Assembly (NCBI RefSeq): GCF_902713615.1
Contig: NC_052156.1
Span: 133,300,407 to 133,364,406 of the forward strand
Reading direction: 5' to 3'
DNA length: 64,000 bases
Origin: Scyliorhinus canicula
Taxonomy: Eukaryota
Both the position numbers and the translations under genes were made by a program. The notes beneath the pieces are model-generated. The model was not told where the DNA came from, ran no database searches, and saw nothing but the letters and a program-made list of their open reading frames with translations. Positions 8,085-54,984 of this stretch are shown here, piece after piece; the stretch's first letter is position 1, and every line of letters starts with the position of its first letter.

Positions 8085-8390
8085 TGGACAGCATGGTAAC
8101 ATAGTGGTTAGCACTGTTGCTTCAGTGTCAGGGTCCCAGGTTCGATTCCCGGCTTGGGTCACTGTCTCTACAGTCTGCACATTCTTCCCGTCTGCGTGGG
8201 TTACCTCCGGGTGCTCCAGTTTCCTCCCACAATTCCCGAACAACGTGCTTATTGAGGTGAATTTGACATTCTAAATTCTCCCTCGTGTACCTGAACAAGC
8301 GTCGTAATGTGGCGACAAGGGGATTTTCACAGTAACTTCATTGCAGTGTTAATGTAAGCCTACTTGTGACAATAATAAAGATAATTATTA
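8085..8390 (+). mobile_element. tRNA/V-SINE with 'cttgtgacaataaagattatt' tail
   Basis: Full head, core and tail; an inverted relative lies at about 7690-7920. Confidence 0.8.
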
Positions 8391-12719: not shown

Positions 12720-13790
12720 ATCCAATTGGCCCCCTTTCTCCATCAATAATATATCTGGCTTGTTTGAAATTTATTGAATCTGCTTCCGTCACCTTTTCAG
12801 GTAGTGCATTCCAGATCATAACTTGTCTGTTGTAAAAAAAAAAATTCTTACGTAACACCTCCTGCCTATTGGTAGATTAGGTTAGTGACAGTAAGGAGAA
12901 ATTATCAAAAGTCATGATTTTGAATGCTTCTATTAGCATTTCAGCTTTTCCCCCCAAGTCCTGTTTCCCTGCTTATCATTTGAGTAAACTTCCTCTGTAC
13001 TCTCTTTCTAAGGCTTTGACATATTCCAGAACACAGTATTCCAGTTATGGCCTAAATTGAACACAGTATTCCAGTTATGGCCGAACTTGATTTTTATTAA
13101 GGTTTTACATAATTTCCTTGCTCTTTGTGGCCAACTTCTATTTATAAAGTCAAGGATCGCGGTTTTAAATAACCGTCTCAACTTGTCCTGCCATCTTGTG
13201 CACATAACATCGCTAGTTCTTTGTTCCTTAAAAGTGCAAAGTTTTTTTGTTTTGAAAAGGATATACTTGCCAATTCAGTGAGCATTTAACTGTTTGTGCA
13301 CTGTGATCACAAAGCGACCAGCAGGACAGTGGGGAAGGAGTCCATGAAAGTTAAAATTTAACTTTTAAATTAAAGTTGGATTAAAAATCATTTGGCATAA
13401 AGCATACTTTCATGACACTGTAATGTTTAACATTGGAACAATTGGTTTACATTTCCACTCCTCATTCCTCCTCCCTATCAATTTTCATTTCTGTTAAATT
13501 GCATCTGTCTCGTGTCAATCCATTTCACCAGTCTATCTTTGTCCTGAAATTTCTTATTATCCTCCTCACTGTTTGCTGCATCTGTGTTCCATGCCATCTG
13601 CAAACTTTGAAATAATGCCTTGTTTGCAAAGGTTCAGGCCATTAATATATCAAATAGAGCAGTGATCCTAATGTCGTTCCCTGGGAAACAGCCCTGCTTA
13701 TACTTCCCTCCAGTCTGGAAATAAATACTACCTTTTACTATCTGTGCCCAAGCACTGGCCCTTTAGTTCCAGGGGCTTCAGGTTTACTGC
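12720..13790 (-). mobile_element. Degenerate CR1-type LINE fragments, including a 30-bp tandem duplication at 13029-13082
   Basis: Reverse strand reads NWNTVF (decayed LEYCVQFW motif) twice; reverse-transcriptase G.PQG-like sequence near 13680. Confidence 0.6.
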
Positions 13791-13812: not shown

Positions 13813-14110
13813 AGGTAGCAAAGTGGTTAGCACTGTTGCTTCACAGCGCCAGGGTCCCAGGTTCGATTCCCGGCTTGGGTCACTGTCTGTGCAGAGTCTG
13901 CACGTTCTCCCTCTGTCTGCATGGGTTTCCCCAGGGTGCTCTGGTTTCCTCCCACAAGTCTTGAAAGACGTGCTGTTAGGTAATTTTGACATTCTGAATT
14001 CTCCCTCCATGTACCCGAACAGGCTATGGAATGTGGTGACTAGGAGCTTTTCATAGTAACTTCATTGCAGTGTTAATTTAAGCCTACTTGTGATAATAAA
14101 GATTATTGTA
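13813..14110 (+). mobile_element. tRNA/V-SINE with 'cttgtgataataaagattatt' tail
   Basis: Full head, core and tail. Confidence 0.8.
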
Positions 14111-26350: not shown

Positions 26351-28048
26351 CTGTGAAACAGAAGAGATATAAATAATTAACAATGTGCTTTTACTAGTCA
26401 TTATACTTAGGAAAACAGACACAGTATGCCATCACGCTTTCAAATCCATTAGATCATGATTGATCTGTACCTCAAACTCCCCTCACCTTCCTTTCAGAGA
26501 GAGAATTTACAGTGCAGAAAGAGGCTATTCGGCCCATCGAGTCTGCACCGGCTCCTGGAAAGAGCACCCCACTTAAGCTCACCCCTCCACCCTATCCCAT
26601 ATCCTTTAATACTTTTACTCTATCCATTTCAATTTTGAAAATTTCAAATGACCTAGAACCCACAAACCTTTCAGGAGAGCAAGTTCCAGATTTTATCTAT
26701 CCTTGTGTCAAAAAGTCCTGATTTCAGTTCTAAATGGTCCAGCTCTAGTTTTAAGGTGATGCTGTTTTGTTCTGGAATCGCCAATCTGTAGAAACTTTTA
26801 TATCTATCTTACTGAATCTCTTTATTATTTTGAACACCATGATTAAATCACCCATCAATCTTCTATGTGTACAGAAATAAAAATCAAGTTTATGCAACCT
26901 ATAATCATGAATTAAAGTTTGAGACTAGTAAAATTCTATTGAATCTGCACTGTACCCCTCCCAATATATACTTGCAAGTATATATTTCCTAAGGTTCGGT
27001 GACCAAAGTTCAATGCAGTATCCCAGATGAAGTCTGACCCACATATTGTACAGCTGCAGTATCACTGCTCCACTATTCACCCACCATCACATAAAGGCCA
27101 GCATCCTTTTAAAATGTTTTGATTGATTTTGTACTTGTGCACCAGCTTTTACTAATTTGTGTGCATGGACAGCTAAATTCCTTTGCTTCTTCATAGCCCA
27201 AAATCTTCCACCATTAATAAAATATCCTGTTTTGTTTCCCACAGAATCAAAATTGATGACCTTTTGCTTCTCCACATTAAACTCTTACGGTACACAGTTT
27301 TGCTCACTCACTTTGCAACTTGCTGCTCCTATCTATGCAATGTAGTGCCGCCTAATTTAGTGTAATTTGCAAATGTAGATTTACAACTCTCTGCTGCTTC
27401 ATCCAAGCCATTTGCAGTATTTAGGGTGAAAAGCTGAGGCCCTAATGCAGATCTTTGGGAACACCACAAATAGAGAATGGAAATTTTGGCCTGTACTGTC
27501 CATCCAACTAACCACGTGTGGCACAAGTTTGGCTCCAATTTCATTATTTTGCTTGCACCCTTGTACAAAAGATGTTGGGTATGATCCCAGTTCATCACGT
27601 GTATGATGCAGGCAGTTATTTAATTCTGCTAAGAGCAGGCTTTTTTAAAGAATTAAATTCAAAAGATTTGTCTCATTTATTTTTCTAAGATAAAAAAGAC
27701 CTCCTTGCCGTCCTGAAACTATTGGTGTATTATAATGTAAATAATTATAGCCCGATTGTAAATTCCCAAATGAAATCTTGCAATGTCTGTCTCTGTTCAT
27801 CTAATGGTCCTTTCTGCTGATTTAGTTATGAAAATATACTTGGGAGGTGAATTATTATTGGAGAAACAAGAATAAATTTGTCCACTCTTATTCAGTGTTT
27901 CACAGCCAGATAATGTAGGCTTAACACTCCTAGTAAAAAGGTAGGAGTAGTGGAAGAGTAATTTTGCTGCACTACAAATCTCAAAACATCTGCATGAGCA
28001 GTCGGTTTATAAAAAAGTCAGATCAAACTTGTCTTTTTAAGTACTTAC

Positions 28049-28272
28049 ATGGATGAACATCCTATTGCTGCAATGATGTTCAAGACAGGAAAAGTGTAGA
28101 TTATGAATCTCAACTCCTTGTGAGGTAGGAAAGAATATAAAAAGATGAAACCAAACGTTGGAAAGAGTAACCTCCAACTCCTCCGATCCCTGGCCCCAAG
28201 AGGCAGAAAGGTTATACTGCAACCAAGGGCACGAGGCAGCACCGAGTAAAAATACCAGAAAAAGGGCGAGGT
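28049..28272 (-). CDS. ALG12: ALG12 coding exon 6 (224 nt): [17 protein letters not shown]...[14 protein letters not shown]
   Basis: PHKELRF signature of GT22 mannosyltransferases; donor GTAAGT. Confidence 0.95.
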
Positions 28273-29014
28273 CTGAATAGATTCTCAGTCAAGGAAGCAC
28301 AAAAAATTGTAACTTAAGTCATTAAACTCAAAAAAATATATACATTTAAGGAGTCAGCAAATAACGTTGCAGCCTATCAAATGGAAATTGATTAATTAGG
28401 GATTGTTAAACTAATAGAACAGAATTGATCCTCAACTTTCCTTCAAGAGACAACTTCCAATGCTCTTATTTATGGATTAGATGCAGAGAAAAGCTCCCTC
28501 GACTCTGCTCCAAAGATGTCTCCCCCGTGCCCTCACCACAACCCCAACCGCTCCCCCCCTTCAACCCCCACCCCCTCCCACAGGAGGTGGGAGGCGGTGC
28601 AACATTTCCCAGACTAGGCATACAGGATTCAGATTGCTAGTGAGTGACAAATGTGGATTCCATGTCAATTAGCAATTAGAATGGTTTCACAGATTCTTAT
28701 AGCCAAGAGATAAAGACGTTTGTGACATCAGTCTGCACTGAATTTGAACCTATATCCTACAGTGGAAAGAATCAATGTGTGATGACTCCCACACTAATCG
28801 ATGATTAATTGTAATATTTCAAGTTAGTGATAATCACAGATTGCATCAAAATAGGACAGTCAGCAGATCTCATATTTAGCCTCATATGTAGTGAGACAAG
28901 TTTTAAAACTATATATTCCCAGTGAAGTCAATCTCAATTAAAATAAACATTTTCACTTCTCAGAATTCCGTTTTGAGTTCTACTACAGTGATTTGAAGAC
29001 CATGTAAAGGATAG
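28273..29014 (-). other. ALG12: U12-type (minor spliceosome) intron of ALG12 with CT...AG termini
   Basis: 5' splice site CTATCCTTTAC (29014 to 29004); U12 branch point TTCCTTGAC (28296 to 28288) with the branch A at -17; ends CAG; phase 0 joining WG|TSP. Confidence 0.85.
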
Positions 29015-29118
29015 TCCCCATTTGGAGCTCTTATTCAAGACTGTGTTGTACCAAAGTACTTCTCCCTCAGGCCATAGGAGACGTCGCCAAAATATAGAAT
29101 CCACGCACACAGTTAGAC
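29015..29118 (-). CDS. ALG12: ALG12 coding exon 5 (104 nt): [35 protein letters not shown]
   Basis: DS.FW...WPEG.VLWYN motif; length as in human. Confidence 0.94.
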
Positions 29119-29221
29119 CTGAAATGAAATACATCAGATGTTACTAGATGTGATTATTTGGTTGTGTGGACAAGCCTTTCAATTCAAGTCCTGGTCAAAG
29201 AACAAACAGTAAATGACTTAC

Positions 29222-29416
29222 CCAACCACACTAAACCAGCTGGAACTGCATGGCACAGAATTTCGAAAATAGAAATACGATGGTTCACCAATGATAGCAG
29301 CAGCATGAGGCCCAGGAAAATGCAAAGTTCGGATCGGAACACAATGATAGATAAAGCAGAAAGCCAGATAAAGCTGCCATAGTTCTGTTTCATCCAGGCA
29401 GTAAATGCCAAGATAA
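29222..29416 (-). CDS. ALG12: ALG12 coding exon 4 (195 nt): VILAFTAW...[13 protein letters not shown]
   Basis: FR.EL motif; TTGCAG and GTAAGT boundaries. Confidence 0.94.
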
Positions 29417-29624
29417 CTGCAACATAAAGAAAATAGGCAGTTTTCAAATTAATTTGTCCTTTAAAAAGTATGTGCTTATAGAAATATTTCTTACTGAAAC
29501 CTTCTCTGGAAGTAAAATGTTTGCATGTGAACATGTATTGCTTTAGAACAATTTCAAATCTTAATTTAATCCAGCACAGGTCCCTTTATTATATGTACTG
29601 TACATTTTCAGTCACTACCTTCAA

Positions 29625-30215
29625 TAGTCAGCCTCAGCTCACCAGCACTTGGAGCTAGTCAAAAGATTGTGGTTTCATGTCCCACTCCAGCAGTTGAGTG
29701 CATAATCTATGCTGACACTTTGGTGCAGTTCTGAGGGTGTTCAGTGGTATGGAAAGTTTTGACTTTTAGATAAGACATCAAGCCAAGGCCCGGTTTCCTC
29801 GCTCGTGGATATAAACAATCCCATTGCCCTGTTCAAAGATGCTCTCCCAGTTGCTAAGCACAGTGGTTAGCACTGTTGCTTCATAGCTCCAGGGTCCCGG
29901 GTTTGATTCACGGCTTGAGTCACTGTCTGTGAAGAGTCTCTACATTCTCCCCGTGCCTGAGTGGGTTTCCACTGGTTTCCTCTCACAAGTCCCGAAAGAC
30001 GTGCTGTTAGGTGAATTGGATATTCAGAATTCTCCCTCTGTGTACCTGAAAAGGCATTGGAGTGTGGCGACTGGGGGCTTTTCACAGTAACTTCATTGCA
30101 GTGTAATGTAAGCCTACTTGTGACAATAAAGATTATTATTACTACACTTCAACAGTACTTAGTTGTCCATGAAGTGCTTGGGGAATCCTGAAGTCGTCAA
30201 AGGTGCTATAATTTC
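29625..30215 (+). mobile_element. Deu-domain (SacSINE-like) SINE interrupted by a V-SINE at about 29857-30140
   Basis: tRNA-like head plus 'gctgacact..gtgcagt.ctgaggg' core; the tail resumes at about 30142. Confidence 0.6.
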
Positions 30216-52695: not shown

Positions 52696-54984
52696 TTAAT
52701 AATAATCTTTATTAGTGTCACACGTAGGCCTACATTAACACTGCAATGAAGTTACTGCAAAAATCCTCTAGTCGCCACACTCCAGTGCCTGTTCGGGTAC
52801 ACCTGAGGGAGAATTCAGAATGTCCAATTCGCCTAACGAGCACATCTTTCGGAAACCAGAGCATCTGGAGGAAACCCACGCAGACACGGGAGAACGTGCA
52901 GACTCTGCACAGACAGGGACCCAAGGCAGGAATTGAACTCGGGTCTCTGAAGCTGTGAAACAACAGTGCTAAGCACTGTGCTACCGTGTCACTGTTTCTA
53001 TGTTGAATTTATATCAGATATTAGTTAGGCTAGAGTTGAAATATTACATACAGTTCTGGGAACACTATTACAGGAAGATTATCTGAGTCATAGGAAGGCA
53101 TTTTCAAAAGGCCTTTGATAAAGTGGCAGCATGGCCAAGGACAGAATATGTGGAGTCCGGGTACAAGAAGCAGAATAAATAACCAATCTCATTACAAAAT
53201 AGAAAACAATAGTTTCCAGATATTCACAGGTAGGTAGACTCTGTGGACCATTAAAAATCTGCTGGCGGGGCCTTGAATTGGAAGCCCTACTCCCAGTACT
53301 GATGGATCCGATTTTTACAGACGGGGGAAGGAGACGCGGCGTGATGCAAACATGAGGAAAACCAAAACTTAACATGGCTATTTGGACTCCATGTTGAGGT
53401 CAAATAGACTGCATATTGCCTGCTTAAAAGGCTGTAACCCTGTGTGGGAATCACAAATTGATGGGGTATGTTTAAATGCTCCTGAAGAGTGAATAAGGTC
53501 TGTTTAAATGTCATGAGGTGACGTTTTTTTAAATGTTCCACCCTTTAAACTGTTTAAGCTGCAGCTGTAATCGATAGTTTAAAAAAACATCTACTGGGTT
53601 GCTTTGATTGACAGGCCAGCTGGCGCAGCATCTGTTTGTGCAGTTTTAACAGAGCTCTTTGTTTACATTTCCCAAAGGCTATTATAATATCAGGTTGAAA
53701 GCTTGGCTGAGTTTCAAAAGGTAAATTATCTCTGGGGTGGGGGTAGTTTGATTGACAGTTTAAAGAGTCAGTTGTTTTCAGATTAGATGTTAATTGAAGT
53801 TTGTTTTCATTAGTGGTTCACCACTTAATACATAATTGAAAAACCTCCAAGGGATCAGGGGTTAATGCAGGACTGTGTTTTTGGAAGGCCAAGATCAGCC
53901 ACAATCATGTTGAATCGTAGAGGGGTTCGAAGGGCTGAATGACCTACTCCAGCTCCTAATTCGTATGTCCTTGCGTTCTTAAAAGCTTTGAATGGACTTC
54001 ATAAATTGAAGGTTTTTTCACTAGCAAACATGTCGAGTGAGAGCCCTCTTAGATTTATAAAATTTTATTCCACATGACTCCTGAGATCTGCCCACAGTAG
54101 ATACTGGATGAGTTGGCATTGGTTTGCATCGATATATGACAGGCCATGGGAAAATAGGTAGAGGGGTGAGAGGGTGTAAAGGGTGAGAGCTAAAGGGCCT
54201 GATATCTTCTAAAACATCAGGGACAAGGTCCCCCAGATAACCAAAGCTTTATTTTATAATCTTTATTGTCACAAGTAGGCTTACATTAACACTGCAATGA
54301 AGTTACTGTGAAAATCCCCAAGTCGCCACATTCCGGTGCCTGTTTGGGTACACGGACAGAGAATTCAGAATGTCCAAATTACCTAACCACTCGTCTTTCG
54401 GGACTTGTGGGAGGAAACCGGAGTATTTGGAGGAAACCCACGCAGACACTGGGAGAACGTGCAGACTCCACACAGACAGTGACCCAAGCCGGGAATCGAA
54501 ACTGCGACCCTGGAGCTGTGAAGCAACTGTGCTACCGTGCTGGCATTCTAACTAGCACTTACTACTGCTGTGCGCCCTCCTAGGATCTGTCTCTGTGGTA
54601 GGAGGACCGGACTCCATCCCACATCCCCGGAGTGAAAATCTTGTGACTCGTGGTTCTCTTTACCGAGGGGTAGCACTGGCAAGTCATGGAAGTTCAACTA
54701 CCCGACTCGGTAGTCAAAATCAGGCCCTGGGGGTTTATAGGTAGTCTGACAAAGGTGGGAAGTGATTGTCAGTGCTGAGACTTGCATAAAAGATTTAAAG
54801 TCTGGAATCGGAAATATTTTGGGCTGGCTCCAAACTGGGGGGAAAGTGTAGTTATTGTAGAGGAGGACTGCATCAAAATATGGTAAGACAATAATAAACT
54901 TGTAGAATGGGCACGTAATCAGCAAATGAGCTTCAATATAAATACATTTGAAGTGCTACATTTGATAGGACGAATGAGATGTCA

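Follow-up and report, generated by a model that had tools for sequence, protein, structure and literature searches.

A pyrimidine-first, probably U12-type intron in ALG12 of the catshark and other elasmobranchs

The ALG12 gene of the catshark Scyliorhinus canicula contains an intron that starts with C, and public reads confirm that the RNA is spliced exactly there, between CT..AG ends (28273-29014 on the minus strand of the window, by which we mean the whole 64,000-nt stretch of DNA that was analyzed). Very probably, this is an ancient U12-type intron in which the purine at +1 has been replaced by a pyrimidine, and in which the register of the splice-site box sets the place of the cut. Its orthologues show that both the position of the intron and its U12 boxes go far back in evolution, with G or A as the normal first base. 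The catshark RefSeq model already contains the CT..AG junction; new here is the recognition that it belongs to a conserved pyrimidine-first U12-type intron, together with the RNA proof, the spread of the pyrimidine among elasmobranchs, and an annotation trap associated with it.

Recent work splits minor introns into A-type and G-type. The natural non-canonical U12 subtypes described by Sheth et al. 2006 (PMC1557818), namely AT-AG, AT-AA, AT-AT, GT-AT, GT-GG, and GC-AG, have A or G at +1 throughout. The elasmobranch ALG12 introns resemble these subtypes in having intact U12 boxes, off-consensus termini, and a subtype that switches between related species, but they differ in that +1 itself is a pyrimidine, whereas in the published subtypes +1 is a purine and it is +2 or the 3' end that varies. 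Supplementary Table S1 of the pan-eukaryotic survey by Larue and Roy 2023 (PMC10639083) counts two CT-AG and ten TT-AG introns among ~73,670 conserved animal minor introns; the termini are the same as those described here, but they appear as bare counts with no gene, lineage, RNA evidence, or discussion, and they may or may not be these ALG12 introns. ALG12 itself is a documented minor-intron gene, conserved as such between human and plants.

In current models of the second catalytic step, the two terminal bases of an intron contact each other. In the minigene used by Dietrich, Fuller and Padgett (RNA, 2005), a 5' C or U in a U12 intron was reportedly highly deleterious. By contrast, the elasmobranch ALG12 introns naturally combine C or U with a 3' G, and the catshark intron is spliced as the main form. 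The minigene and the ALG12 case are alike in addressing the pair formed by the +1 base and the last base of U12 introns, and a passage on the minigene in Parada et al. 2014 states that a 5' A is compatible with every 3' base and a 5' G with G or T. A natural C- or U-start intron in an essential glycosylation gene, used as the main form in the catshark and very likely kept since sharks and rays split, is a ready-made natural substrate for studying what the minor spliceosome needs at +1. Its cut site appears to go by the register in which the TATCCTTT box sits, and not by the dinucleotide. Splicing specialists should find the case clearly interesting, and others modestly so.

The catshark ALG12 intron and its RNA junction

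The host gene is the catshark ALG12, which lies on the minus strand of the window and whose product we take to be the Dol-P-Man:Man7GlcNAc2-PP-Dol alpha-1,6-mannosyltransferase (Pfam PF03901). At the protein level, its homologues bear PF03901 and ALG12 names. A Scyliorhinus ALG12 protein (P0477) maps exactly onto the window with 495 out of 495 residues, in nine coding blocks that make up a coding region spanning 17373-39175 on the minus strand. All ALG12 donors in the window start with GT, except that of the 742-nt, phase 0 intron at 28273-29014. Upstream of this intron lies a 104-nt coding exon (29015-29118, minus strand), which ends ...AAATGGGGA (Lys-Trp-Gly), is covered by RNA contig pieces at 29015-29116, and exactly matches residues 224-257 of P0477. 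Downstream lies a 224-nt coding exon (28049-28272, minus strand), which starts ACCTCGCCC (Thr-Ser-Pro) and is supported by the sequence, the RNA contigs, and the P0477 mapping. The flanking translations read ...NKSSKWG and then TSPFFWYF..., and the junction WG|TSP is common to the ALG12 proteins of catshark, sheep, mouse, and bird. An earlier sequence-only reading had proposed this gene, the exon sizes of 104 and 224 nt, and the KWG|TSP junction, on all of which the sequence, the translations, and the P0477 mapping agree.

The intron start reads CTATCCTTTAC. Its 5' splice site, CTATCCTTT (29006-29014, minus strand), has C at +1 (29014), followed at +2 to +9 by the U12-type box TATCCTTT; set against RTATCCTTT, eight of the nine positions fit, in register, and the ninth, +1, is C and not A or G. 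A U12-type branch-point box, TTCCTTGAC (28288-28296, minus strand), fits TTCCTTRAY and has its presumed branch A at 28289, i.e., at -17, or 16 nt before the last intron base. Boxes of the TTCCTTRAY type usually sit ~10-20 nt ahead of a U12-type 3' site. The 3' splice site, seen in both the sequence and the RNA joint, is CAG (28273-28275, minus strand); the sequence preceding it, TGAGAATCTATTCAG, is not pyrimidine-rich, and no pyrimidine tract was found ahead of the CAG. The 5' box and the branch box with its A at -17 had both been pointed out in the sequence-only reading and are borne out by the sequence. The terminal dinucleotides fall outside AT-AC, GT-AG, and the listed variants with a purine at +1, the RNA joint being CT..AG, and no GT or GC donor was seen at or near the used donor at 29014. 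Over the whole 64-kb window, TATCCTTT and TTCCTTRAC are found at chance level; the motifs gain their significance from being placed exactly at +2 to +9 and at -24 to -16 of one and the same intron, and from orthology. A perfect AT-type U12 5' box, ATATCCTTTT, also lies downstream of ALG12 (13256-13265, minus strand), and one such 9-mer per 64 kb is within chance.

Four public runs were aligned to positions 27300-29800, one of them DNA (X9) and the others RNA from three different studies (X10, X15, and X32). In both X10 (contig depth 55.6) and X15 (contig depth 47.4, a single 1402-nt contig with three exons), the RNA runs directly from 29015 to 28272 and leaves out 742 nt with CT..AG ends, and the same joint is present in two raw reads of X32 that share one start. 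The joint has 0 mismatches and zero letters common to both sides, so that the position of the cut is unambiguous, and the lack of a direct repeat argues against template switching by reverse transcriptase. As a control, the same RNA contigs splice the adjoining 103-nt intron (29119-29221, minus strand) as an ordinary GT-AG intron; this joint skips 103 nt, and its plus-strand CT..AC with a cut of +2 corresponds to GT..AG on the minus strand.

The C at 29014 was found again in two independent places, namely in the DNA contig of X9, a sample differing from the assembly, and in an unspliced 449-nt contig (28596-29044) of the RNA run X10. X9 represents an independent haplotype or individual, because it departs from the assembly at three positions, all of them ordinary intronic polymorphisms: part of its depth carries an inserted ATT after 28830, position 29690 has A in place of G, and position 29753 has G in place of A. 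Non-canonical splice sites first of all raise the suspicion that a single base is wrong, and beyond this nothing was found to suggest that the C stems from faulty assembly or sequencing, or that it is private to one individual; since X9 and X10 both carry the C, the sawfish likewise has C, and the whale shark and the electric ray have T, assembly error and private variant are excluded, and this explanation as a whole has practically no chance of being correct. The description of the intron as CT...AG with C at +1, which the sequence-only reading had put forward together with the 29015-28272 junction and the view that splicing at a CT start was plausible, is upheld by the X9 DNA, the unspliced X10 contig, and the RNA of X10, X15, and X32, in which the CT..AG joint is in use.

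An alternative AT..AC junction and gene models

The KWG|TSP junction had also been claimed to be the only one that preserves the frame, which turned out not to be so. An AT at +3/+4 of the 5' box, combined with an AC at the start of the downstream exon, permits a second intron that keeps the frame, has canonical AT..AC ends, and has either end 2 nt further downstream (28271-29012, minus strand); it would give Trp-Gly-Leu-Ser-Pro. The same 2-nt shift is possible in all five species checked, mouse included. It could thus be argued that the AT..AC intron is the true one and that CT..AG is merely a choice made in alignment, the more so as the shifted intron keeps the frame and has canonical ends in every species examined, and as the models of Narcine, Heptranchias, Cetorhinus, and Mustelus have WGLSP or WGLLP. 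However, the resulting mRNAs can be told apart by two letters, reading GGAACCTCG after a CT..AG cut and GGACTCTCG after an AT..AC cut, and the catshark RNA matches the first with 0 mismatches; only the CT..AG form is present in the catshark RNA contigs and reads. Furthermore, skate transcripts encode WG-T-SP, the threonine is conserved as far as an amoebozoan (Protostelium), and an intron start of ATCCTTT would sit 2 nt out of the U12 5' box register. As an account of the true intron, the AT..AC pair is thus highly improbable, and as the main form in the catshark it is refuted by the RNA; a minor use of it may lie below what contigs can detect.

The CT..AG cut is not the one found in all gene models. 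While WG|TSP is already found in the models of the catshark, whale shark, and sawfish, the RefSeq model of Narcine bancroftii uses the AT..AC shift (L005 7388-8664, checked on DNA), the ALG12 models of Heptranchias perlo and Cetorhinus maximus have WGLSP, and that of Mustelus asterias has WGLLP. Leucine thereby takes the place of threonine in four of the ~22 elasmobranch species for which an ALG12 model was seen here, and in these four the leucine appears to be an annotation artefact that results from forcing canonical AT..AC ends. The arrangement YT|AT...AG|AC always leaves a canonical AT..AC pair 2 nt off, and the trap yields a false Thr-to-Leu replacement at a residue that is conserved from amoebae to mammals. 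The tripeptide after the junction does vary, being WG-TLP in Hemiscyllium ocellatum (epaulette shark, P0474), WG-TFP in Polypterus (bichir, P0363), and WG-TSP elsewhere; at the junction, serine is less constrained than threonine.

Orthologous introns and the origin of the pyrimidine

The intron of mouse Alg12 (L002 4677-5211, 535 nt; ...TGGGGC|GTATCCTTTCAG...CTCCTTAACcctaagccgaag|ACTTCC) is a canonical GTATCCTTT...TCCTTAAC...AG U12-type intron with G at +1. Mouse Alg12 and mammalian ALG12 share with the catshark the WG|TSP codon position, phase 0, and the exons of 104 and 224 nt, which places the catshark intron at the same position as an accepted U12-type intron. The mouse and catshark introns are further alike in their identical TATCCTTT at +2 to +9 and in having a U12 branch box shortly ahead of the 3' site. 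They differ in that the mouse intron has G at +1, TCCTTAAC 13 nt before AAG, and a length of 535 nt, whereas the catshark intron has C, TTCCTTGAC 16 nt before CAG, and a length of 742 nt. A canonical U12-type intron, GTATCCTTT...TCCTTTAC...AG, with codon position and phase likewise unchanged, is also found in a TARA metagenome scaffold from a marine eukaryote (L001; GGT|GTATCCTTTCC...TTTCCTTTAC...TAG|ACC).

For three further elasmobranchs, the first base of the intron could be read directly on DNA, as for the catshark. The sawfish Pristis pectinata (L004 12194-13562) has the 5' end CTATCCTTTAC (CTATCCTTT) and TTCCTTGAC...CAG at the 3' end; the whale shark Rhincodon typus (L006 9800-13070) has TTATCCTTTTA (TTATCCTTT) and TTTCTTAAC...CAG; and the electric ray Narcine bancroftii (L005 7386-8662) has TTATCCTTTTC (TTATCCTTT) and TTCCTTGAC...CAG. 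All four elasmobranch introns end in G. An alignment of six species (A3) shows no variation at +2 to +9, whereas the bases at +1 are C, T, C, T, G, and G.

Indirect evidence for C or T at +1 comes from the skate and from three sharks. A search with the open reading frame that runs from the exon into the intron returned fragments from many species, mostly with WG|VSF (GTA TCC TTT), along with WG|ISF (ATA) in two teleost-like fragments and WG|LSF in one (P0272). The latter is a genomic open reading frame whose exon is identical to that of skate ALG12, for which both the Leucoraja erinacea model and skate transcripts have WG|TSP, and the combination of LSF on the genomic side with WG|TSP in transcripts implies that the skate intron starts with CTA or TTA and is spliced at the same position. 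A pyrimidine at +1 is likewise implied in Heptranchias, Cetorhinus, and Mustelus by their WGLSP and WGLLP models. The proteins were collected with a profile built from an amoebozoan ALG12 and four exon pieces of the window (A2), in which chondrichthyan proteins ranked top; 90% clusters of the chondrichthyan ALG12 proteins name some twenty species. A scan of metagenomes for the exon end followed by YTATCCTTT found nothing.

Among sharks as well as among rays, some species have C and others T. From this distribution, the pyrimidine at +1 probably dates to the ancestor of sharks and rays and has since undergone at least two switches between C and T, a dating that rests on sharks and rays among the cartilaginous fishes. 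Sharks and rays split ~250-300 million years ago.

Between the catshark and the rays (L004, L005), the first 70-110 nt (28901-29014) and the last 70-90 nt (28273-28359) of the U12 intron can be aligned, and so can several other ALG12 intron flanks. Between the catshark and the whale shark (L006), long stretches of most ALG12 introns align. This conservation of flanks looks like slow sequence evolution in elasmobranchs rather than the mark of a specific element or enhancer.

Splicing machinery and efficiency

In the mechanism that we favor, the terminal dinucleotide would not decide where the intron is cut; this would fall to the U12 branch box and to the register in which the TATCCTTT box lies. 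Base pairing of U11, and later of U6atac, with the TATCCTTT box would begin at about +4, while U12 would pair with the branch box. The cut would fall one base before TATCC, whatever that base may be, and the AT..AC pair 2 nt downstream would be ignored; that the RNA is in fact cut before TATCC rather than at the nearby AT fits recognition by register. For the 3' site, the machinery would take the first AG that it can use, 16 nt past the branch A. The change at +1 would have arisen before sharks and rays split and then drifted between C and T, the pyrimidine being tolerated at about the normal efficiency of a U12 intron and somehow, we infer, passing the second catalytic step together with the terminal G. 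Both the branch point and the dependence on the minor spliceosome are deduced from motifs and orthology, and we hold the latter with high, if incomplete, confidence.

The idea, raised in the sequence-only reading, that recognition by U11 does not depend on +1 was correct in part. The pairing of U11 snRNA does skip +1, but the U11-48K protein contacts +1 to +3 according to a passage in Moyer et al. 2020, so independence does not extend to the protein. In a paper on the U11 snRNP, U11-48K cross-links to U+2, the pairing of U11 is short, and the interaction between U12 and the branch is dominant. The first base is not irrelevant to recognition, but in the catshark ALG12 intron it is evidently not decisive.

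Introns bearing U12-like motifs are in some cases reportedly spliced by both machineries (PMC10853781), and one might suppose that the catshark intron, its U12-like boxes notwithstanding, is handled by the major (U2-type) spliceosome or takes a hybrid route. We consider this quite unlikely, given that the used donor has no GT or GC at or near it, that AAATGGGGA|CTATCC has essentially no complementarity to U1, that the CAG lacks a pyrimidine tract ahead of it, and that the U12 boxes at this position are perfectly conserved across animal evolution.

With removal by the minor spliceosome as the preferred reading, the RNA runs also give a rough view of its efficiency. Unspliced contigs on the 742-nt intron in X10 and X15 cover the intron in part and have depths of 3.4-6.4, compared to 47-56 for the exons, which corresponds to an unspliced share of ~7-13% of exon depth, contig depth being a crude measure. 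On the other introns of the aligned region (27300-28048, 29119-29221, and 29418-29800), these two runs have no RNA contigs, and the silence of the neighboring introns indicates that the signal on the 742-nt intron is not due to DNA contamination. By the rough measure of contig depth, the intron is thus removed more slowly than the neighboring major introns in two RNA runs; contigs lose rare isoforms, and their depth gauges efficiency poorly. The minor intron of human ALG12 has a retention of 8% in unaffected controls (PMC4667643), a similar baseline, and the unspliced share in the catshark, near this value, is about normal for a U12-type intron.

A G-rich low-complexity tract with GGGGG and TGGGGG runs lies inside the U12 intron (28540-28620, minus strand). 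The contigs of all DNA and RNA runs break at this tract, where the depth of X9 falls to 0.15.

The sequence-only reading had suggested that the intron could be a rate-limiting step for ALG12, and in a stronger form of this idea, the pyrimidine would be an adaptive brake through which ALG12 expression becomes unusually responsive to minor-spliceosome activity. The pyrimidine has been kept across elasmobranchs, and the unspliced signal is limited to the U12-type intron among the introns in 27300-29800, as a brake would lead one to expect. On the other hand, the ~7-13% unspliced in the catshark is no higher than the 8% of the human orthologue and gives no sign of unusually limiting splicing, and the free interchange of C and T fits tolerance as well as it fits selection. 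A brake is therefore unlikely, and the pyrimidine at +1 gives the impression of a variant that is tolerated, not of one that specially throttles ALG12.

A broader and rather doubtful possibility is that sharks and rays have a third, so far undescribed class of minor introns ("Y-type", with a pyrimidine at +1), which might stem from a relaxed minor spliceosome or from a common sequence context. If this were true, ALG12 would be the first visible Y-type case, others being hidden by pipelines that force canonical ends.

Elsewhere in the window, an interspersed, SINE-like repeat of ~285 nt (29857-30141) lies in the ALG12 intron upstream of the exon at 29222-29417. It has many copies in the window at 70-92% identity, for example at 13817-14107, 54256-54534, 8100-8390, and 52697-52982, and a second short repeat is found at 26502-26598.
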